NCBI GenBank assembly: GCA_000708835.1
Contig: DF237119.1
Coordinates: forward strand, 62,001-126,000
Direction of reading: 5' to 3'
From: Klebsormidium nitens
Lineage: Eukaryota; Plantae; Klebsormidiophyceae
Length of the DNA stretch: 64,000 nt
The translations under genes were made by a program, and so were the position numbers. Below the pieces are notes generated by a model. It ran no database searches. It worked only from the letters and a program-made list of their open reading frames with translations, and was not told the origin of the DNA. Position 1 is the first letter of the stretch. Every line of letters starts with the position of its first letter. Shown one piece after another: positions 280 to 28,427 of the stretch.

Positions 280-3200
280 GTGTGTCGAGCTGCTGATGCG
301 CGCGGGCGCGATTGTGGATGCCAAGGACCGGGTGGGCGTTAGCGCATTGATTGCGGCCTCCTATAACGGACACGTGGACTGCGTCCGAAAGCTACTCAAG
401 CATGCAGCGGACGTCAACGCGCAGAGCCACGGGGGCGTCACGCCGCTGATTGCGGCAGCGGAGGGGGGCAGCGAGAGCTGTGTACGGTTGCTGATTCAGG
501 TAGGGTGATAGATGAAAAATAAATCAGGTAGTAAGCGAGAGACTTTAAAAGATCATGGCGGAATGAACTCTGTTATACCGAAAAAAGGTCCTTCCAGAAG
601 CTCTCAAGACAGTAGTCTAGTAACCGTTTTGCGAGCAAGACGAGAGCGCCTTGGTGGTGCTCTACCTTTGACCGGTCAGGCTCACGCAGTGGCGTCCTGA
701 AGAAGGTCTGAACTCGGTGTATCATACAGAGAATGTTCCCAACGCTTCCTAACTTGCGCACTTCAGTTCAAGTGCATGGAGCACTTGAGGAAGTCGGTCG
801 GCTTCTTTGAACAACATCGGAAGGTAGAACACCTGTGCGCCCGAAGAAGATTACTGATCTGCTCATAAGTTGACTAGTCTCTCCTCTTAGTCCAATCCGA
901 TGTTGTGGATTTCTCGTCGGCATATCTCGGATCCATGAGCAAACTTTACACCGCCCCTTCACCCTGAGTACTGGAAAGGTGGGACCGAAGACGTACCGTT
1001 AAAAACAAATCGTGTCTCTGCAGGCAGGGGGCGACTTGGAAGCCCGGACCGCCGAGGGGAAGACCGCCCTGATGCACGCCGTGGGCCAGAATATCACGGC
1101 CGCCGTCGAAGCGCTCATCTCTGCGGGTGCGGAGCTGGACGGAACGGACAACGAGGGGAGGACGGCGCTCCACCACGGCGCGAGGAAGCAGACGCCGGAG
1201 AGCTTGTGAGTAGCAGTCCACATTTGAATCTTTCACATGTGAGTGCACATGTTCGGATTCGAGGTTGTTATAGAAGGCTTTCCGAAATCACTTGAGGAGC
1301 TTTTCGAGAAAAATCTGGTCCTTTCTGACGCTTCAATTGAGTGGAAACCGAGGTGAGCTCACTGGTCTTTCAGTTGGTGTCTTTCTGGTCAAACTCGTGC
1401 TTCTTCTATGTTTCCAAGTTGTCGCTAGGGAACCGGTACTGCATTGCTCAGCTTTTACTTGAGTGCATCGATACACTTGGTAGTTCTGGTGGTATTGGGG
1501 TCACGAAAGCATTCTACATGTCCCATTATACACGAAGCAGCATTGAGCCGCTTCCATATCGTCCACGAGTATCAATGTCTTCAGTCCAATCCCGACCAGC
1601 CCTTTCTTCAGAGGCTGATGTAATTCCGTCCTAACAACATGAAATTCCCACCTCAGGAAAGCGCTGCTCAAGGCCGGGGCGGATGCCGCCCGCCGCTGCC
1701 GCCGGGGCCGCACGCCCCTGGACGAAGCAACCCCCCAGAGCGAAGCAGCCGCAATCCTAAGCGAGCGGTGGAAGGAGCTCGAAGTGGAAGCTACCCAGAA
1801 GCAGGAACGGCTTCTAGACGAGCTTCACGAGTCGAGTGCGGCGACCGCAAACGAAGGAGGGGTGTCGAGAAGCGCCAGGAAGAAGAGGGGGAAGAAAGCG
1901 CGCCGGAGGGAGAAAGGGGGGCCGGGGCAGGGCGAGGTGATTGGGGCCGGTTTTGGGGGAGAAGGAGACTTGGGTTTGGGAGAGAGTTTCGAGAAGGTTA
2001 GGGAAACCGGGCTGGAGAGCGAGCAAAGCGGGGTGACAAGCCTCGAGGCGACGGACGGAGAAGAGGAGCCGCCCGATCCGGTCGGAAGCTCTCTCCTTCG
2101 GAGCGACGAGAACGGAACGGATTTGGGAGGAAGCTTAGCGCCCGGGGAAGCAGAAGGCGTCGGTCGAATAGGGGCGGAGAGCGGAAGCGCGTTGCGGTAT
2201 GTGGATGTCCTCAGCCAGAGTGAAGCGTTGCAAAAGGGAGAGAATCACGATCACACAGACGAGACGACGGAAGAGTCAATAAAGCGCTCGGAGGACGACT
2301 CCACAGTCCCCTCGGTTCGAGAACCGCTGGCCGACGAAGCGGTGGAAATAAGCTCCTCGAGCGAGGGCGAGTGGGTCACGGTGACGTCACACCGGGCGCG
2401 GAAGCAGGCGGGGGCCGTAGGGGGAAGAGGCCACGTGGGTCGTTCCGCAGGCGAAACGACGCCAAGGAACGAGGCGAGTAAGGGGGTGCGAACGGAAGTC
2501 TCGTCCAAAACTGGGACAGGTAATTGGAGCGGGGTTCCTGATCGGCTCAACGCGCGGTCCGGTGATGGGGTTGGAAGAGCGACTGAGGGACAGGTGCAGG
2601 GGAGCGGAGACGTCGCCGCTTTTGTCAGCAAGATCATCAGCAAGCAGGCGGCGAAGTCGCAAGCGGAGGAGAGAGTAGAACCGGAACGGGAACAAGTAGA
2701 ACCGGAACGGAAACAGCTGCAGGAGCTTGAGCGAAGACTGGAGGAGAAGAGCGCAGAGCTCGCAGTGCGTGAGAAGCGGCTGTCGGAAAAGGAGGGGGGA
2801 GCAGCAGCGCCTGTGGAGCCACCCCCCCGGGACAAAGACAACCCCTGGCAGTTGCCACGTGGCAAAGGGGCCCCCATTCCTGCAAAGGACGCCCCAGAAA
2901 ACCCCCCGGAGATCGTATCGGGGCTGGAAGCGAGCAGTTCTCAGTCAGGAGGGGACGATACTGAAGTCGAAGAGAATGCAGACCCGGTAGCTCAGAGTTT
3001 GGTTCGACAGGGCCTCGAAGAGAAGGATTCCGACCAGGAGAATAAACCCGAAGTTGGCCCAGACTCGGCAGTCGCCGAGCTGCTTCGGCAGAGCCTCGAA
3101 CAGAAAGACAGGGAGCTGCTTCTGGCAAGGCTGGAGATAGCACGGCTTTTGAGTGTGTTGGCGGCATTGAAGTCAACGCACGAGGAGGAGTTACGTCAGC

Positions 3201-4774
3201 AGAGAGTTGAGGCGCACGCGTCAGCGATGGCGGCAGCGGCTGCCAGCTGGCATGCATGGGTTGCCCAGGGTTTGCCCAAACCCTTCCTTAACCCTGTGGG
3301 AGTTTTGCCGACATCTTCCCCTAACCCCTCTAGCCCGGCGGATGTGTTTGAGATGCAGCGCGCAACCCCCCGGAGCAAAGCCGTCGGTTCCGAGCGTTCC
3401 CGTTCCGGGGGGCAGATTGCCAGGACAAACAGTGCTGGGCGCCCCCCCCCAACGCTGCTCCGGGACCAGACTGCGTGGGCGGCCGCGCTGCCCCCCCTCC
3501 CCCTCTCCCGAGCGAAACAGGACTCGCTGCAAGAACCGCCGGACAGCGGAAACCCCGAGTGGTTGAAGGAATCGTCGGAGAGCGGAAAACCGGAATGGTT
3601 GAAGGAGGCCGCGGCAGCCGCGGCGGTTGCCGCCGCCGCAGTGATGCGGGAAAAGGCTTTTGCGCAGCACTGGGGGGTCGAGCGCGCGCGTGCGCTGCTC
3701 CAGGGGGAGAAGGTGCCCCTGGTCGGGGTGTCCCCGGACCCCCCCCCGCTCGCGCCGCCCGCAACGCCCCCCCCGGAGAGCCTTTCCGGGGCGCCCTCTG
3801 TGGTTTCGAGTGGCTGGTCGAGCCGACCGACCACTGCGGAAGGGGGGGATGATATTGGGCTCCCCCTAGAGACGGACCAGCTGTCGGAGAGCAGCGGGAC
3901 CAGCAGCGTTCGGAGCGAGGGCTCGCTCCGGGGGGGTCAGTCCGTCCTAACGTTCAGACCCCCCTCCACGACCGTAGCGAGCCCGCAGCCACTTACACCC
4001 CCCCGAAGCGAGCTGCAATCACGGGGACTGCCCCCCGTTAGCGCACCCCCAGGTTTTCCGGCCCTGAGATTGAACCCCCTTACGCACTCTGCTTTGAGCT
4101 CTTCCACGGCCGGGCCCCCTCCAAGTGAGGTATCCGTCTCAACAGCGAGCGAGTGGGTCTTTGACGCGGCGGCCGGCCGAATGGTTCGCGGCAGCAGCGG
4201 GGGCGTTTCGGCGGGCCCCGTTTCGCCCGAGGAGCTCTTGAGCCAGGCCCCGAGACTCGGCCTCAGCGCGACCCTCGCCCGCAGCAGGGCCTACTCCAGC
4301 AGCAACGATCTGGCCGGGCTGTCATACCGGTCGTCTTTCGGCCCGGCGGGCAGCTTCGGTGCGACTGAAGGGAGCTATGGCCGGTTCAAACCGCCTCAGA
4401 TATTGCCTTTGACATCACCGTCCACGTCTGTCTCGGACACAAGAGTTGGGTCTCCGCTTGGGGGCCGATCTTCCGAGCTTCCCCAGTCGAGCGCAGAAAC
4501 AGGTTACGTTGCTGGTTCTCTTGCCGGGGTTAAGCTGGGAGTCAAGCCCGGGTTAAGCCGCTGGGGTTCGGGGTTCCGGACGCTGTCCGGCATGATGCGG
4601 TCCGCAAGCGAAAGCCACCTGTCAGCGTTAAACAGCGACGGAGGAGTGCTGCCGTTCGCTATAAAAACTCCGGTCGGAGGAGGGCAGGGCTGGTTTAGTC
4701 TGGTCCCGAGCCCCTCAGAAGGCTCCGAAGAAGCAAAGCATGGGCCGGGGCGGGGTGCTGAAGTTTTGATCTGA
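280..4774 (+). CDS. Ankyrin-repeat protein, 5'-partial, with a long low-complexity/coiled-coil C-terminal region
   Basis: Exons 280-499, 1024-1205 and 1657-4774, all AG/GT-flanked with matching phases. Ankyrin consensus is repeated (G.TPLIAAAEGG..CVRLLI, GKTALMHAV, GRTALHHGA, GRTPLDEA). The last exon is open for ~1039 codons and includes ORF 1784..4774. Upstream exons lie outside the window. Confidence 0.9.
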
Positions 4775-11389: not shown

Positions 11390-12732
11390 CCTTGCAACCT
11401 TGCTAGATAATCTATGAGATCCACCTGTATGGAAACGCGGAGGCTTCTCTACTTACTTCATCAGAGACTTACAAGAATGTTCCCAGTGAAAGTCTAATTT
11501 GGCGCCAGAAATTCTCTCCCGTCATGGAGGCATCACAAGGAAACCTTTTGTCCCACAACGTGATTGCATCCCGCTTCACCTACAGTAAACTTTGGCTGCC
11601 TCCAGAAGTATCCAGCAAGCCAATCAGAGCAGATTAAGAAGTCCTCGCAACGAAGAAGTACCAGCTGGGTAGCAGCTGGATCGCCCCACAGGATGAACCC
11701 GAAACCCTGCACCTTTCGATCCTGCTGCCAACGCTCTGTACTAGGTATGTAGATCTTCATTTTAGCTGTCGAGTTTTGAGACAAGATTCTCCCAAGATTC
11801 CAAACCCTCCCTGGTCTGCCAGCTGTCAAGATCCCGCTGTAGCGCTTCAGCCTTCAGCCTTCCGAGTCTGGAGAAGCTCGGCCTTTGTTTGCTGTACAAA
11901 CTAGGCACGTCGGAACTTTGGTTCAGAAGAAAAACATCTGGGTGAAAAGACGGCACTTTACCGTTACCCGGTGCCGATCTGCGACGCGGCGGCTGCCGTT
12001 TGCGGAAATGTCCACATTTTCCACGTGGTTCACGTGCTATTTGCTTTGGGATCGCGGCTTTTCGCGCTCTGGAGTCTGCCAGTGTCTGCTGGCTCCTGTG
12101 GCACCTATCAGGGCGGTGTTGACACTGACGTACTGATGTCAGCATATGATATGGGTACGATGGTTCAAAGAGAAGACGCCACATTTCGTGCATGAACATC
12201 AAAGGATGAGGGACCCGACACCGGGGTTGGCGTTGCGCAGCAGTCTGCAGAGTCCAGACTCCTTAGGTTTGCGGAGTATCAGCTGCAAGCAGCATTACTG
12301 ATCAGGTGTAATTGTGTCTTTCCTTAGACGAGGATTCGATCTTGTCGTTGCATGCCCCATGCCTTTGATTCGCACGGGCTATAAGAGAAGTATCCATCTT
12401 GTCGTTGCAAGCCCGCCGGCGGCGTTGCTCGATGCAAGTAGTATCGAATTAGCTCGCTTGAATTTGTGCAGGTGATATGTTAGAATTATTGCAAGCGCGT
12501 TTGTGTACGTGAAGCCCGGAAGCAGTAGCGCCGGTTGGGGTTTCCTCTGGCCCGTACAGTTTCTCGTTGAAGCAGAAAACTTTTCAATTTCTTTGTGCCC
12601 TCTCCAACGAGAGAATCTTTACGTCCAGTGTTCGCTAGCACGCTCCAGTTCCAGCCCACCGTTACTGCTCACCTCTTCAACCGCTTGCTGCAATTGACAC
12701 GCCAGCCAAAACAAATACTTTGCACTCAGGAA

Positions 12733-15700
12733 ATGCCGCTCTTTCCCAACAAAAAGAAGGGCCCCATCGGGGGCCACGTCACTGAGGAAGAGTATGTGAC
12801 TGATGAGTTGAACGGCGTGGAATCCATGAGTCACGGGCAAAAGCAGATGCCGTCATTCATCGTGGCCCCAAACCTAACTGAAGAAGAATACGTTGGACAG
12901 GAAGCTGACGGTGGGTCGCAGCAAGGGAGAGATCTGTCTGGGAATGTAAGATCCGGTCAAATTGACCAAGTACAAAACGGGGTGGCGCAGAATGGGGTTG
13001 CGGAAAAGAAGGCGGGGAAAGGAAAGGTGTCGTTTTGGAAGCGGACTCTGAGCCGAGGGAAGAAAGAAAAGCGGCCGGCAGATGGAGCAGTAACGGAGGA
13101 AGAGTACTTTGAGTCGGAAAGAAGAGTTTTGAACGAAGCAACTGAGAGCCAATTGGAGAAAGTTTCAACGAGCAAGTCAAAGTGCGCCAAGACGAGCGAG
13201 AGAGAGGATGTTGACACGAGAGAATTGGGGGATGCAGAAACTAAAACATTGGGTAATGCGAGCACTAGCAACTTGGAAGTAGGAAGCATCAGCGGGGAAA
13301 CAAATGCCAACACAGGCGCCGGGCAAGAAGTGGCGCTTTTGCAGAACGGTCTTGAAAGTGGACAGGATGACAGCGTTCGAGGAGAAACTGCCTATGATAC
13401 CCTGGTCCAAGAGGAAAGCACAGCTGTGCAAAATTCTGTGGGAACAAGGGATGGAGACAGAAGCCTGGGTGTGGCATGGAGCGGTCCGACCGTCGACGAC
13501 CATTTAGACCGACACATGCAGGACCTGCGGATGCTGATGCTCCCGAAGCGGCCAGGGTTTGAACCCAAACCTTGGGACGCAACAGGTACGATTCTCCAAC
13601 TTTTTGAGTTCGTTAGGTCCCATTTTGACTTTTGGAGCATTCGGTTGCGCAGCGACGTTGGTGCCAAAAGATGAAAGGTTTCATCCTGACACAAAAGCAC
13701 AGGGCCATTTTATCCTTTTGGAGTCCCTTGTTGTTTCCTCATTCCTATTGAATTTGGGGCCAAGTCTGATTGATTCATCAAACTGTGACAGATCAAGCCT
13801 TTGAGAGAAGCAGAACGTACAGTTAGGTCATCATAAGAGTCAGCAACAATCTAGGTATGATGAGCATCCTGCAGCGGTCCATTGGAGTCAGTTTCTGAGC
13901 AGAGCCTCGTGGGTCCTCAAGAAGGAAAAGAATCTCCATTGCTCGGGGGCCTTTTGCACCCATCACCACATAGAGTCAACTTCAGGCGGACCGCAGAAGC
14001 TCAAGATGGCCGAAATCGCATCGCAGCCGTCCGATCTTCACATAACAAGCCCAGTCTGCAACATTTAGCCTCAAGGGGTTCAATAGCGTGAGGACAGGTT
14101 ACCGGACCGGGTTTGAAGCAAAGTTTGCAAACTGCTTGGAAACGACAAATCTGAAGCGTCCATTTTCTGACGTCAAAAAATAGACGATAGCGACGCGGTT
14201 TCGTCCTGTTCCCCAGCCATTTCAATCTTCTGCGGTCCGCCTGACTTTATTTCATAGTAGAATGGCATTCGCATCAGTACCTCCTGCACGAGCGAGCCTG
14301 TTCCTCTGGCTCAATCCAGTCGGCAGCCTCGCTGTCGTCTTATAAGTCTCCTGTACAAAGTTCAAAACTCCTGATTGCTTTCCTCCTCGACAAGCATGAG
14401 CAACCCATAAAGTCTGCAGTGTCCATTGCTTCACGGAATGCCGCTACATCTCCCCTCAACATCCAGCCCGATTTGGAGTCTTCCTTGAGGCTCTGTCAAA
14501 GGAGTAAAACTATGAGTATCTTCTTGTGGAGGCACAGACGCCTCAAAGCCCCAAGTCCTGAACCCTTCATTCCATACTCACAGCGGCGAGCCCGTTCCTC
14601 GACTTTGGTCCAATCGACAGGGTTGCGATCCGGGTGCGAATACTCCCCGGGGGCACTGATTGCCCCCCTATTGTGTTCAAGAACGACGGAAAGCGCTTCA
14701 AGGATCTGAGCCACACCGACACATGCGTCAAGTTGCGCGAGGGGATGGACTACTTCGTTGGTCTCAAGCTGATGCCTCCGGTGCTCATCAAGTGAGTGCG
14801 TTTACCATTCAGAATTATTGCGAACGCCATTCGCTTGCTTTCTGATGGCTTTCTGGATGCCCTTCAGGGTCTCGCGATTTTGAGAGAGAGCGATGGTAAC
14901 CTTATTGAATTACGGGGTCATCTGTACGGTGCGCTAGTTGGGGTCTATTCCAGCCACTTTGGACCTATTCTTGGACATTCTCTTGGATCGATTGAGACGC
15001 TTGGATCGAGTCCCCCAATCTCCAAGCCGAACGAGCCAACGTGGCCTCTGATCAAAACTGGTGTCAGTACTCAACTTGCTTCGGACAGCTCCCCTATTGA
15101 GCAACCGATTTCAATTCACGGGAAGACCCTGATTTACGACGGCGAGCATCTGTCTTGGCGGTTGCTTAACTGTCAAGTCGTTCCTGTCAAATCGGTTGCT
15201 TGCCTCTTGTAGGTCATCTCCGTTCACATGAACGTTTTGTCGCATCAATGCATATCATCTCATCATCGCACATCGCATCTTCCCTTTTTCAGTTAAGTGC
15301 TGTCGCAATGTCACTCGTCTTTTCAGTCGTCTCTGGTTGGACTTTGTAGACAGCTGCTCTGCTCGCTCCTAAGGGAACTTTAGCTTCAACAAAACAAGAG
15401 CCTCGTGACCTTTCTTTCAAGCGCGTGCTGCTGTTGCTCTCAGGTCGAACTCGGCGGACCTGCAGGTGTTTAGCAGCCTGAAGGGAGAGGACTCGGGCAC
15501 GCTGCACGAAGTTGGCAAGCTGGCGCTGACGCCAACGCGAGAGGGATACTGTGGGCGTTGGAGGTGAGTCTCCGCTTCCTGTCCTGAAATCATCCTCATT
15601 CTCGTTCTCATTTCCAATTTCTCAGTACACTATTCGTTTTGCTCTGGCGCTGACAAGGTCTCGCAAGGGGTATTGCTCGCTGGAAGATGGGTCTAAGCTT

Positions 15701-17475
15701 CTGTCTTTGGTCATTCTCTTTTGCGTTACCTTTTCCGTCTTTCCTTCGCTCTTGTCCTTCTGAGCGTGCACGCCAGACTTTGAGATGGAAGTGGGAATAC
15801 TGTGCGCTTCATTGTGGGTCTCCGGTCCCGTTCTTATATGCCTTCTCTCCCTCACTTTTTTCTTCCCCCTTTCACCTTTCCTCGCTTCCTTTCTTTCCTC
15901 CGGGCACTTTGACCAGATTCCCGCCAGAAGCGGGTTCGTCCTGAAAAAGGTCGACTTTGTCGCTAAGAAAGCGAACGAGATCAACGGTACGATGTCCCCC
16001 CCCTGCTTCTTTGCAGGTGTCAGTTACCGTCCTCGAAGAACGGGGATCGAAGGCGGATGTTTCTGAAGCTCGAAATCGAGGTAGGTTGCGAGAGTGGAAG
16101 TCTCGTAGGCTAAGAAGCGTGGGCGCAAGGAGCTTTCTGGATCAAGAACCCCTTGCTACAAAGTTCTACAATAACGTTCATCCCTGCGATTGAGTGGCGC
16201 CTTTGCTATTTCACTAAAAGCGACCAGGCAGCCTCGCTGTCTGTCTCCCGTCGAGGTCCTTTATTTGGCCACCCATCTTCCCTGAAAAGATCCGAGATGC
16301 GGGTACGAAGCGAAAAGGCAATGCTGGTGGTTACAGATCGGGTCGATGCAAACTGCGCCCGATGTTCAAACGTGGATAGGGAGTCGAGGAACAATTTCGC
16401 CTTCAATTGTTACGCAGAAGTCCGCTCAGACTGGGACTCACACTTTTCCGACCTGATGCGCAATACCGTCAGTCGCTTGGACGTTCGATAAGAGACTCTT
16501 GGCTCTGAAAAAGCTTTGCGCGTCGTTTGCCATTATGCCTTGGGGAGACCTCCTTAGACGATGCAACGAGTGCGTAGAAAGGGTCCTTGCAATCCAACTA
16601 GAAGCTCCTCTTGAGTGTCAGGACAACGGCCTCATGACCGGATTTAGCTTCGCGGTCGTCAGCGATGACGTTTCACTGAAATGACCACGGTATTCCTCGT
16701 CGTGCGCGCAGGGGATAGGCTGGATCGAGTTGCCGCTGCTTGCGAAGGTCTACGCAGGTACGCGCCTTCACTGCCTTTGCTGTTCTACAGTCTCACTGGA
16801 AGTCCTAGAAATAAAAGGAATCAATCCTCTTTTTTGAGCAAAACTCGTCGATTTGTACGTCGCTATGCATTGCCCTTCTATCGGCGGTCTTTCGTGCACG
16901 GATGCGTTTCAAGTCGCTGGGTCCTAGGTTGCAAAAAGGCGCTTTCAGGAAGCCATGATGGCGTTCTTTGACGACGAGGATACAGAGGTCACTCCTTGCG
17001 AGTATCGGCCATCGACCTGCCGTTCACTGGTTTGATCAAGGCTCTCATCCTTGGGCGTTCCCGTTGACCCCTGTTTTATTGGAATATGAGTCCGACTTGG
17101 TATATTTCTACCCGGACTTACATCGACAGAATCACAATCCGGCCGTTCCTTGAGACTGGTCCTATTTATCTCTCTGCTGCGTTTGCGAGGACGCTTCAAA
17201 TCTGTGCACTACCTGCGTCCACGAGTTCAGAGTTCTACATTTGACAGGACCGTCGCTTCGCTTAACCAGCTCTGTCTCCCATCTCCCCTGCAGACGACGA
17301 CCGAGGGAGCAGCACCTCCGGCTCTCCCCTGGGGGCGTTGCTCTACCGGTGCCGGGCAGACCCCGGGAACTCGCTCCTGGGACAGGTGGTCACGGTGGAC
17401 ATTCTTGATTGCCCCTGGGAGATGAACGACCGGTTCAACTGGACGCGCCCGGGGAAAAGCAACCAACCGTACTGA
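12733..17475 (+). CDS. CNRIP1 (CB1 cannabinoid receptor-interacting protein 1, CRIP1a)-domain protein with acidic disordered N-terminus, ~490 aa
   Basis: Exons 12733-13585, 14584-14791, 15444-15563, 16017-16080, 16712-16757 and 17294-17475 total 1473 nt (491 codons), with every junction AG/GT and in phase. The C-terminal domain IRVRILPGGTDCPPIVFKNDGKRFKDLSHTDTCVKLREGMDYFVGLKLMPP...YCGRWRCQLPSSKNGDRRRMFLKLEIEGIGWIELPLLAKVYA...GSPLGALLYRC aligns in order with recalled human CNRIP1 blocks. Confidence 0.8.
13982..14244. mobile_element. MITE-like element (263 bp) in intron 1 of the CNRIP1-like gene
   Basis: Perfect 18-bp terminal inverted repeat TCAGGCGGACCGCAGAAG (13982-13999) / CTTCTGCGGTCCGCCTGA (14227-14244), extending imperfectly inward. 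No coding capacity. At most a 2-bp (CT) target duplication. Confidence 0.5.
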
Positions 17476-18965
17476 TGCATCGGAAGGTCGAATTGCTTGC
17501 GGGTCGATCATTGACATCGCTCGTTGCGTAATTGCTGATATGGCGATTGGTAAGCGGAAGATTTGAGGGGGAGCTCAGGTCATGCAGCATGATTTGCTGC
17601 TGGTGAACGGTACGTAAAATCTACTAGGTTTTAATGGCCGCCGTTCTAGTCCGACTATGATAGCAGCAGAATTGTGACTTCACGTTTTGGTGGATCAAAG
17701 CTTGCTTTCATCTCGAAGCCGAGCAAATGATTATGATTCAAATGCGGTGATCAGACCTTTTCAGCAATAGGAAGCCATGCACACGGTGTCGGAAGTAGCC
17801 GCTGTAATTAAGTACAGCGGTAAGCCGCCAGGCAAGTTTTGGATAGGGGCAGGGAGCCCACTTCGATTACCATAATCTGTTATCTGAGGGTTCTAAGCTT
17901 AGGTGAGTCACTTGGGCAAATCGAGTTTGGTTATGTACTGTACTGGCTATGCGCTGTTGTCATTGCTGGACAGACACCAGTGTGCGTCGTGATTTGTAAT
18001 TATTGGCGAAGGATATTGGGGGTTTGCCTCTTTTTGCGGGGATGATATTGAGTGTCTGCCCAGATTTGGTGCAACACCGGCCTGATTTTCAAATGTGGTA
18101 AAATGAGGGTCATGCAGAAGACTCTCGTGGCCATTATCGGTAGTTGATCATGCGCCAAATTGGCCAAAGCATGCATGCTCGGGACGTATGGGACGGCCAA
18201 GACCATCCATGCTGGCATGCAGCCATGGCTATCCAGGCCCAGTCAGTGCGAGCTCTATTCCTGTCTCAGCGAATTGTCAATTACCATGGCGGCAATGCAG
18301 TACACTAACGAAGAAAACAGGCTCGCCGCCACTGTCGAGCTTATAGAAGCACATCTAGGGCGCACGTGTACGCGGCAGCTCAATCGCAGAGTAAAAAAAA
18401 AGAAATCTTAGAAATTAGGAAAGGAATTGTATTGTGAAAAGGACGCTTGAACTCAAATCACTAACAGTTGAGGCTGACCATGAAGTTACACACAATCCAG
18501 CTTGCAGCACGTACAGACTTCCGGCCAGTCATAAAGCCAAATCGGATCCTCCTTAACTAGACATCGAAACAAAAAGAAGAATGACTCAAGCCTCCTTATC
18601 GGAAGAGAGAGAAGGCAACAGGGCGGCCCATAGTAGCAGTCAGACTTGAGCGCCCCTGCCTCCTCTTCGTGAGTCAGCGAAAACATGCACACCTTGATTA
18701 ACCGGTCTTTCTTTCCAGTTGGGAAGGCATTCTATGAGTGCGTAAGTACGGTCTATCTTACGATCCGAAACGTTCGGGGGAGTGCTCACAAAGCGTTCTG
18801 GCACGACTTGGAAATTCTCAACGAGATCGATTTGTACGTAACGGCAGATCTCACGTTACTGATCTGCGTCCCTAAGCCGCTGTCACAAGCGGTGACCAGC
18901 TCATAGCGAACGAGCTAGGGCCTCGATCATTTAAATGATGATCCTCGTCCTTTGTTTCACTTGAT

Positions 18966-27077: not shown

Positions 27078-28427
27078 CTACTTTCCCCTCGATCGAGACT
27101 GGAAGTTAGACATCCCAGCGCCCGGAGAGGGCCCTCCCAGACTATCTCCGAGCGGAGACGGAAGCATCGGGTCTTGAGGGCTAAGCATGTTCTCAAGGCC
27201 TATTCCAGACCCTGTGCTCCTAAGAGGGAACCGATTTGGGCCCGTAACAGTGGGCCCCAGCGAAAAGTTCCTCCGTAAGCTTAGGGGCTGGTAATACGGG
27301 CTCCCCATCCTGCTCCCAAACCCAGCCTTCGGCGAGACCACCGATGCGCGCTCTCCCCCAAGATAGTACCGATCATTCCGCTGGTCCCAAGAAGCACTAT
27401 GCATCAGCCGGGTGCGCTCCCCTGGTCGGTCCCAGTCCCCAGCAATGCCTGCACTTGGGCCCCTTTCTGATTCTACCTGTGGCTTGGCATTTCGATGTGG
27501 GGACCCCCCGTCAGGAAGCTCGCCTTCCTCCAGCGCTTCGTCGTCTTTTTTCAGGGGGGCGGTAAACTGGTTTGCCGTAGCAAGGGGGGACGGGTGGCTC
27601 GAGGATGCGCTCGGCAGAGGGGATGCGTTTGGCATGTAATAGTTGGGAGAAACAGTTAGTGAGCTGGGTGACGGGACGGGCGACGCTGTAAGAGGCGGCC
27701 GCACAAACTTTCTCGAGTCCTCCCGTACCAGGACCTGTTTTAGCTGCTGGACAAGCTTATGCTTCTTGCTCTCCAGCTTGTTCAGTTGCTCTTCTAGCTC
27801 CGCTTTTTCTACCGCCTTTCTTTCCTCACCCTCCGCAGATGGTGACGCCTCCCCTTCCTCTTCCTGCGGTGTCTCCCGCCCCAGATCTTGCACGGTTTTC
27901 CCATTTCTGGTCAGAGCATCATCCTCAGCGTTTGGTAAAACCTCTGAATCTTGGTCAATATTACCCCTAGCCCGGGTGCCCTCGTCACCTTCTGCTGCTA
28001 ACCCCCCATTCAACCCATCCCTTTCTGCAGCATCCAGAAAGTTTCCTAGCCTACTCCCTTCCTCATTACCTTCTTCCGCTTCCCCCTCCCTTTCCTCCTC
28101 GACGGCCCCTGCAGGCCCTGCGCCATTATTACCCACTTCTACCGTCCTTTCGCCTGCCTCCTTATCCTCGCAATGCGGCCCCGCTGACTCGGCTGGCGGC
28201 CCTCGCTCTGCCTCTTCATTACCATCAATCTGCATCGGGTCCTCTCCATTGGGGAGCTTATCTGAGAGATTACCCTTGTCCCCTCTCTCCGTCCCTGAAT
28301 TTAGAAGCACGATTAGACTGTCCAGCGTGTGTCGGCGCCTCTCCAGCAACGCCCGGAACACGCCGTGGCTCAGCACCTTCTTGGGGAGCGGGTAAATCCG
28401 CGGTACACGGTGCTGGGAGGCCACCAT
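27078..28427 (-). CDS. Single-exon conserved streptophyte protein of unknown function with central coiled coil
   Basis: 449-aa ORF. The N-terminus MVASQHRVPRIYPLPKKVLSHGVFRALLERR and coil LEEQLNKLESKKHKLVQQLKQVL resemble a recalled uncharacterised land-plant family (MVA..LYRGNLHRVP...F..LL.RR; ..KKHNLVQ.LKQIL). The gene is divergent from the golgin gene. Confidence 0.8.
   Translation of the reverse strand: MVASQHRVPRIYPLPKKVLSHGVFRALLERRRHTLDSLIVLLNSGTERGDKGNLSDKLPNGEDPMQIDGNEEAERGPPAESAGPHCEDKEAGERTVEVGNNGAGPAGAVEEEREGEAEEGNEEGSRLGNFLDAAERDGLNGGLAAEGDEGTRARGNIDQDSEVLPNAEDDALTRNGKTVQDLGRETPQEEEGEASPSAEGEERKAVEKAELEEQLNKLESKKHKLVQQLKQVLVREDSRKFVRPPLTASPVPSPSSLTVSPNYYMPNASPLPSASSSHPSPLATANQFTAPLKKDDEALEEGELPDGGSPHRNAKPQVESERGPSAGIAGDWDRPGERTRLMHSASWDQRNDRYYLGGERASVVSPKAGFGSRMGSPYYQPLSLRRNFSLGPTVTGPNRFPLRSTGSGIGLENMLSPQDPMLPSPLGDSLGGPSPGAGMSNFQSRSRGK

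Follow-up and report, generated by a model that had tools for sequence, protein, structure and literature searches.

The 64-kb window analyzed here (64,000 nucleotides of contig DF237119.1 from the streptophyte alga Klebsormidium nitens, with positions given as those of the window) carries KFL_001700110, a gene whose 490-amino-acid product, P0001, almost certainly belongs to the CNRIP1/CRIP1a family. CRIP1a has been studied almost solely as a neuronal modulator of the cannabinoid receptor CB1. The explanation that accounts best for our data, and one that we regard as probable, is that KFL_001700110 is a gene of six exons, transcribed and maintained by purifying selection, encoding a disordered N-terminal tail followed by a CRIP1a-type barrel that would act as a carrier of lipid-modified protein ends.

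An initial annotation, made from the letters of the window, had presented the gene as a hidden CNRIP1 homolog. Its family assignment holds; its claim to a new gene does not, given that the gene model is public and already tagged PF15043 and that relatives are found in six or more genera of green algae, the one from Tetraselmis with an automatic family name. The family is thus already annotated in algae, which removes part of the novelty. The gene model, the Pfam tag and the automatically named relatives were known; what had gone undiscussed is that an “animal neuronal” family extends into green algae.

Family membership and predicted fold

The CNRIP1 domain occupies residues 295 to 474 of P0001, approximately; the part of the protein that follows the N-terminal tail, roughly 190 residues, forms the CRIP1a-type beta-barrel. 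Compared with the Pfam family CNRIP1 (PF15043), the protein scores 41.3 bits (E = 1.6e-10; cut-off, 27), with residues 312 to 458 covering positions 18 to 149 of the 157-position profile; the Pfam scan of P0001 returned no family other than CNRIP1. In an exon-by-exon scan, exon 2 by itself (68 amino acids) scored 21.8 bits (E = 1.5e-4), the other short exon pieces being too small to score. When residues 285 to 490 were compared by phmmer with all Protein Data Bank (PDB) sequences, rat CNRIP1 was the only protein found, matched end to end (7q2t, E = 2.3e-5; the T4L fusion 6wsk, E = 2e-4). A profile made from an alignment of 14 algal CNRIP1 domains (A1), seven unnamed relatives among them, reached rat CNRIP1 7q2t at E = 5.6e-16 and matched no other PDB family. 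At that level of significance, the relationship to rat CNRIP1 is one of homology and not of mere resemblance.

The predicted structure leads to the same protein. An AlphaFold2 model of the domain, built with A1 (predicted local distance difference test [pLDDT], 83; predicted template modeling score [pTM], 0.80), comprises eleven strands plus a short helix (residues 150 to 153), in agreement with the antiparallel beta-barrel of about 10 strands and short helical cap that characterizes CRIP1a. A Foldseek search of the PDB with this model placed the rat CRIP1a structures on top (6wsk, E = 2.4e-10; 7q2t, E = 3.1e-7), with all other entries at E = 1e-3 or weaker. VIA-align, which is independent of Foldseek, gave 7q2t a Z score of 14.4, with a root mean square deviation of 2.4 over 138 residues and 23% identity; the next chain had a Z of 6.8. 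In a shape search of the ESM Atlas, the chordate CNRIP1 cluster came first (template modeling [TM] score, 0.69/0.86). The initial annotation had placed the gene in this family and had proposed to check it against the Pfam profile, against the CRIP1a structures and against spliced RNA. All three comparisons were run and all three agree with it: a Pfam score above cut-off, an algal profile that leads to rat CNRIP1 and a specific fold match support a CNRIP1/CRIP1a member in a streptophyte alga, and its transcripts are spliced as predicted in contigs from four studies (see below).

In the same Atlas search, the shapes that followed CNRIP1 were DUF3694 (PF12473) domains in kinesin-3 (KIF1B-type), RabGAP1-like and PH/PID proteins, with TM scores of 0.56 to 0.62 by query. 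Judging from these models, CNRIP1 and DUF3694 may be distantly kin structurally.

The algal barrel and animal CNRIP1/CRIP1a (rat 6wsk and 7q2t) are homologous over the full length of the domain, with the same fold, and share the motifs DGxRF, T-[IV]-K-L, G-x-R, K-[VF]-Y and G-S-P, as well as the equivalent of rat Tyr46. Rat lid residues Val23, Ile38, Leu40, Tyr46, Tyr89, Ile105 and Trp121 pair with I, V, L, Y, W, M and L in the alga, so that, as aligned, all seven lid and core positions are hydrophobic or aromatic there. Differences include extra loop residues between strands of the algal barrel and the algal 284-residue disordered N-terminal tail, which is absent from the 164-residue vertebrate CNRIP1; in the Caenorhabditis elegans protein F29A7.4, the extension is about 80 amino acids long (PMC5501828).

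The eight peptide blocks quoted in the initial annotation were all found where it had placed them, on the + strand: PPIVFKNDGKRF at 14664 to 14699, CVKLREGMDYFV at 14724 to 14759, LKLMP at 14763 to 14777, YCGRW at 15547 to 15561, PSSKNGDR at 16027 to 16050, GIGWIE at 16712 to 16729, LLAKVY at 16736 to 16753 and GSPLGALLYRC at 17320 to 17352.

Gene structure, transcription and selection

The coding sequence of KFL_001700110, with borders read in the DNA, consists of six exons on the + strand totaling 1,473 nucleotides, that is, 490 codons plus TGA (Table 1). All five introns begin with GT and end with AG, and the phases are carried over consistently (1, 2, 2, 0 and 1). The model is identical to the public 490-residue entry P0001, “hypothetical protein KFL_001700110 [Klebsormidium nitens],” which already has its PF15043 tag in the database. 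P0001 aligned by tblastn to exactly the six exon blocks, and an exon 1 query was 100% identical to its residues 1 to 284.

Evidence from RNA came from contigs of four runs (X5, X6, X11 and X13), each belonging to a different study, placed on positions 12400 to 17900. In every run there is a contig from which the five introns, or most of them, are missing, each omitted piece being bounded by GT and AG, and in three of the four a single contig crosses all five joints (13585|14584, 14791|15444, 15563|16017, 16080|16712 and 16757|17294). Although the records state no library type, contigs that lack the introns must be RNA derived. For intron 2, X13 contributed a loose contig end at 14793 that reads the opening bases of exon 3. 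The transcript extends past both ends of the interval, giving untranslated regions (UTRs) of at least 333 nucleotides (5′) and at least 425 nucleotides (3′). Thus, the six in-phase exons and 490 residues of the initial annotation are borne out by the borders in the DNA, the intron phases, the identity to P0001 and the spliced contigs. It had erred in stating that, for exons 2 to 6, the list of open reading frames (ORFs) shows nothing beyond shadows in antisense or in the wrong frame: the list does include in-frame pieces of exons 2, 3, 5 and 6 (14634 to 14795, 15466 to 15567, 16730 to 16837 and 17338 to 17475), shortened by the start codon rule.

Table 1. Exons, introns and minimal untranslated regions of KFL_001700110 in the window
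Feature	Positions	Strand	Evidence
5′ UTR, at least this much	12400..12732	+	Spliced contigs X5, X6, X11 and X13 cover it and continue upstream
Exon 1, coding: ATG + 284 codons + 1 base	12733..13585	+	Donor CAG|GTAC; ORF/frame
Intron 1, 998 nt, GT..AG	13586..14583	+	Joint 13581>14580, cut +4, 4/4 runs
Exon 2, start of CNRIP1 barrel, DGKRF and CVKL motifs	14584..14791	+	Pfam, borders, contigs
Intron 2, 652 nt, GT..AG	14792..15443	+	Joint 14791>15444, 3 runs
Exon 3, YCGRW at its end	15444..15563	+	DNA borders, tblastn, contigs
Intron 3, 453 nt, GT..AG	15564..16016	+	Joint 15561>16015, cut +2, 4 runs
Exon 4, PSSKNGDRRRMFLKLEIE	16017..16080	+	DNA borders, tblastn, contigs
Intron 4, 631 nt, GT..AG	16081..16711	+	Joint 16078>16710, cut +2, 4 runs
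Exon 5, GIGWIELPLLAKVYA	16712..16757	+	DNA borders, tblastn, contigs, loci of relatives
Intron 5, 536 nt, GT..AG	16758..17293	+	Joint 16753>17290, cut +4, 4 runs
Exon 6, coding: last barrel strands, short C-terminal tail; TGA at 17473-17475	17294..17475	+	DNA, tblastn, contigs
3′ UTR, at least this much	17476..17900	+	The same spliced contigs reach 17900 and beyond

Two related loci, one in a Logan assembly (L001) and one in a JGI metagenome (L002), were retrieved via proteins similar to exon 1, and both keep all six exons in order. Compared exon by exon with these loci, amino acid identity is 43 to 63% in exon 1 and 60 to 100% in exons 2 to 6, with 76 to 90% in exon 2, 87 to 97% in exon 3, 81 to 91% in exon 6 and, for exon 4, 100% in L001 and 85% in L002. 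The ratio of nonsynonymous to synonymous substitution (dN/dS), summed over exons 2 to 6 without joining them, is 0.065 against L001 and 0.146 against L002. These ratios indicate strong purifying selection on the barrel.

At 12170 to 12421 of L002, a prokaryote-style gene call covering the equivalent of exon 2 already has a weak precomputed CNRIP1 tag. It follows that pieces of the family the size of one exon stand as separate “proteins” here and there in metagenome protein collections (P0005, P0006 and P0007).

Intron 4 is also covered by small contigs of low depth, at 16085 to 16631 in X5, X6 and X11, amounting to roughly 3 to 8% of the depth of the spliced contig. Reading through from exon 4 into this intron would meet a stop after 10 codons and yield a product lacking the final strands of the barrel. 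Human CRIP1b likewise shares the CRIP1a sequence only as far as residue 110 (PMC5501828), and in the HMMER alignment of P0001 with 7q2t, intron 4 falls at rat T112|D113. As a lead only, the coincidence could point to a shared old intron position or to a parallel truncated isoform.

Green algal relatives and the N-terminal tail

An exhaustive HMMER search of 1.84 billion representative proteins gave 18 matches: three exon fragments from Klebsormidium relatives and fifteen proteins of 131 to 553 amino acids, 27 to 37% identical. Thirteen of the fifteen lie above the Pfam CNRIP1 cut-off, the short P0011 and P0019 below it. These relatives came to light only through the exhaustive search; word-indexed searches with the domain alone or with the 14-sequence profile found nothing new. 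Those with a species name are from Tetraselmis chuii, Hariotina reticulata, Bryopsis sp., Acetabularia acetabulum, Haematococcus lacustris and Chlamydomonas leiostraca, all of them green algae and chlorophytes, and the others come from unlabeled Logan, JGI and ENA assemblies. The Tetraselmis protein (UniRef100_A0A7S1SLX3) is the one already named “CB1 cannabinoid receptor-interacting protein 1.” No land-plant relative was among the 18 matches, though land-plant proteomes were in the sources searched; a very divergent one could exist, because animal CNRIP1 also fell below the threshold of that library.

By sequence, the green algal CNRIP1-like proteins (A0A7S1SLX3, Bryopsis GMH33121.1, Haematococcus KAL6764067.1 and the transcripts from Hariotina, Acetabularia and C. 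leiostraca) are the closest known to P0001, and all pass the Pfam cut-off, as P0001 does. Thirteen columns of the 14-sequence alignment are invariant, including W109, C111 and KVY. Maximum-likelihood analysis of the 14 domains gave a tree with long branches and no resolution, which bears neither on relationships within the group nor on vertical descent as opposed to transfer. The gene belongs to a divergent green algal branch of CNRIP1 that is present in chlorophytes as well as in the streptophyte Klebsormidium and that is undetected in land plants. The literature describes CNRIP1 at most as “conserved across vertebrates and invertebrates,” exemplified by C. elegans F29A7.4 (PMC5501828). Among searchable papers, none was found that links CNRIP1/CRIP1a to Klebsormidium, Chlamydomonas or algae or that names its Pfam/InterPro accession.

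The N-terminal 284 residues of P0001 are disordered, acidic and rich in Gly, Glu and Ser (net charge, -15), and this exon 1 tail has no Pfam match. It contains the motif TEEEY at residues 17, 49 and 121 (relatives P0003 and P0004 have four copies), in which TEEE is a casein kinase 2-type site, and a basic patch, FWKRxLSRGKKEK; the block HMQDLRMLMLPxRPGFEPxxWD stands directly before the barrel. Among the four Klebsormidium-type sequences, the first 22 residues are conserved, the TEEEY motifs, the basic patch and the pre-barrel block are invariant, and the rest of the tail evolves fast. We infer that the tail may be a regulatory or localizing appendage.

Most of the green algal relatives likewise have a disordered N-terminal extension, yet one of a different kind: 60 to 140 residues, basic and Ser rich, with L-x-R-x-S repeats, compared to the acidic TEEEY tail of Klebsormidium. 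The repeats recur in the extensions of P0013, P0016, P0017, P0018, P0023 and P0024 (LSRVSAP, LGRTS and LDRTS) and, from their residues, look like sites for basophilic kinases. A Logan protein of 553 amino acids (P0022/P0040) has a Pro/Ala-rich tail of 380 amino acids, where NPF occurs five times and DPF three times, followed by its CNRIP1 barrel.

A candidate carrier role and its alternatives

What might such a barrel do in an alga? To our knowledge, green algae, including the Klebsormidium lineage, have no CB1 receptor, and binding to a CB1 tail cannot apply. The role of the protein in the alga should therefore be independent of CB1, and on this point the initial annotation is upheld. The presence of a CNRIP1 gene in invertebrates that lack CB1 had been noted before. 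Because a conserved, expressed relative is found in an alga, where neurons and CB1 are both lacking, the function of the barrel must be older and more general.

The barrel of rat CRIP1a is gapped and hydrophobic inside, and for this protein RhoGDI, PDE6-delta and UNC119 have been called structural homologues; it binds a myristoylated G-alpha-i peptide sequence specifically (Kd, 21 µM) and does not bind the unmyristoylated peptide (PMC8446797). It has been proposed to take the myristoyl or prenyl group of a lipidated protein end into its interior, which would hold the cargo protein off the membrane or shuttle it. We imagine that the algal barrel works as the rat one does, with the variable N-terminal tail supplying regulation or localization; G-alpha would be one candidate cargo, in Klebsormidium only. 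A mechanism of this kind, in which a lipid-modified protein end is carried or sequestered under the control of a lineage-specific tail, is in our estimate close to an even call.

Like proteins of the CRIP1a type, RhoGDI, PDE6-delta and UNC119 are beta-sandwiches or barrels with a hydrophobic interior. RhoGDI is among the weaker structural matches of the algal model (Z, 5.1 to 5.9; RhoGDI2 in Foldseek, E = 1.8e-3), at a level where unrelated Ig-like sandwiches also score, and in a search by language model features, the Rho_GDI and GMP_PDE_delta clusters adjoin CNRIP1. We rejected membership of P0001 in the RhoGDI, PDE6-delta and UNC119 families themselves (PF02115 and PF05351), with neither a sequence or Pfam match nor a top structural match to them. 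PDE6-delta and UNC119 are ciliary carriers, which prompted us to look for a link to cilia; the papers offered no support for one.

Several observations weigh against a carrier role. Even for the animal proteins, such a role is not securely established, and zebrafish without both cnrip1 genes show no phenotype (PMC5501828). Identity between P0001 and rat CNRIP1 is only about 21 to 23%, and PDE6-delta and UNC119 are absent from the top 50 of both the Foldseek and the VIA-align lists. Furthermore, the hydrogen-bond “stitch” (Trp121-Tyr145 and Thr119-Glu161) that closes the gap between strands 8 and 10 of the rat barrel is only partly kept in the alga, with Tyr145 retained (Y164 of the domain), Trp121 and Thr119 replaced by Leu, and Glu161 outside the aligned part. 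The lateral gap through which myristoyl is proposed to enter may therefore be different in the alga, although the stitch belongs to the rat structure and does not define the family.

One can envision instead that the barrel acts on the plant-type heterotrimeric G proteins, binding the lipidated N terminus of Klebsormidium G-alpha or XLG. This would be in keeping with the binding of rat CRIP1a to a myristoylated N-terminal peptide of G-alpha-i (PMC8446797), and streptophyte algae possess homologues of G-alpha, G-beta and G-gamma (PMC6132428). The distribution of the family, however, fits it poorly. The named algal relatives are chlorophytes, and a review reports no G-protein elements in the sequenced chlorophytes Chlamydomonas and Micromonas (PMC3718340), although the chlorophytes with the barrel are not the species surveyed for G proteins; land plants retain G proteins, yet none of the 1.84 billion representatives yielded a land-plant relative of the barrel. 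With the family present in chlorophytes, whose sequenced genomes are reported to lack G proteins, and seemingly absent from land plants, G-alpha is an unlikely partner for the family as a whole; for Klebsormidium itself it is possible, since streptophyte algae have all three subunits. Overall, we consider it improbable that the barrel works through G proteins. We give similarly little credence to a role as a trafficking or endocytosis adaptor, in which the barrel would compete for the tails of receptors or cargo and the disordered tails would recruit sorting machinery. NPF and DPF are classic ligands of EH domains and of the AP-2 appendage, and both occur repeatedly in P0022/P0040, the five NPF and three DPF motifs of which speak for an adaptor; they are also short and common in low-complexity sequence, and the Klebsormidium tail contains no NPF, DPF or FxDxF. 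In nearly all algal members the disordered tail varies and holds short motifs in repeated copies, and CRIP1a is cited as competing with beta-arrestin at CB1 (PMC5501828). The next-best Atlas shapes, the DUF3694 domains of kinesin-3 and RabGAP1 tails, would suit an adaptor as well, but TM scores of 0.56 to 0.62 are a lead, not homology.

That the sequence is no genuine algal gene at all, being an annotation artifact, a pseudogene in decay, contamination by animal DNA or a gene recently acquired from an animal, is hardly credible. Exons 2 to 6 are small, and outside databases the family has been discussed for animals only, which might have raised the suspicion. It is refuted by the spliced transcripts from four studies, by dN/dS values of 0.07 to 0.15 against two genomes that share the exon structure, by an identity to the rat protein (about 21 to 23%) that lies below that to green algal relatives (27 to 37%), and by the five spliceosomal introns of a gene that lies inside a 162-kb Klebsormidium contig.

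Taking the carrier reading one step further, the CRIP1a barrel could be an ancient eukaryotic carrier of lipidated proteins, a third branch next to PDE6-delta and UNC119, predating the split between animals and green plants, lost in land plants and later recruited to CB1/G-alpha-i signaling in animals. We hold this history to be rather doubtful. If it is true, the algal members, with their differing regulatory tails, offer a way to the ancestral cargo that animal knockouts have not revealed. In any case, algae are simple organisms in which to seek the basic function of CRIP1a.

Elsewhere, scans of the whole 64-kb window for tRNA and Rfam families found nothing, and none of the neighboring long ORFs has a Pfam family above its cut-off. 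An open frame of 996 amino acids lies at 1784 to 4774 on the + strand, with no Pfam family, and on the - strand, at 27078 to 28427, a frame of 449 amino acids matches G_path_suppress weakly, its 21 bits falling short of the 34.3-bit cut-off.

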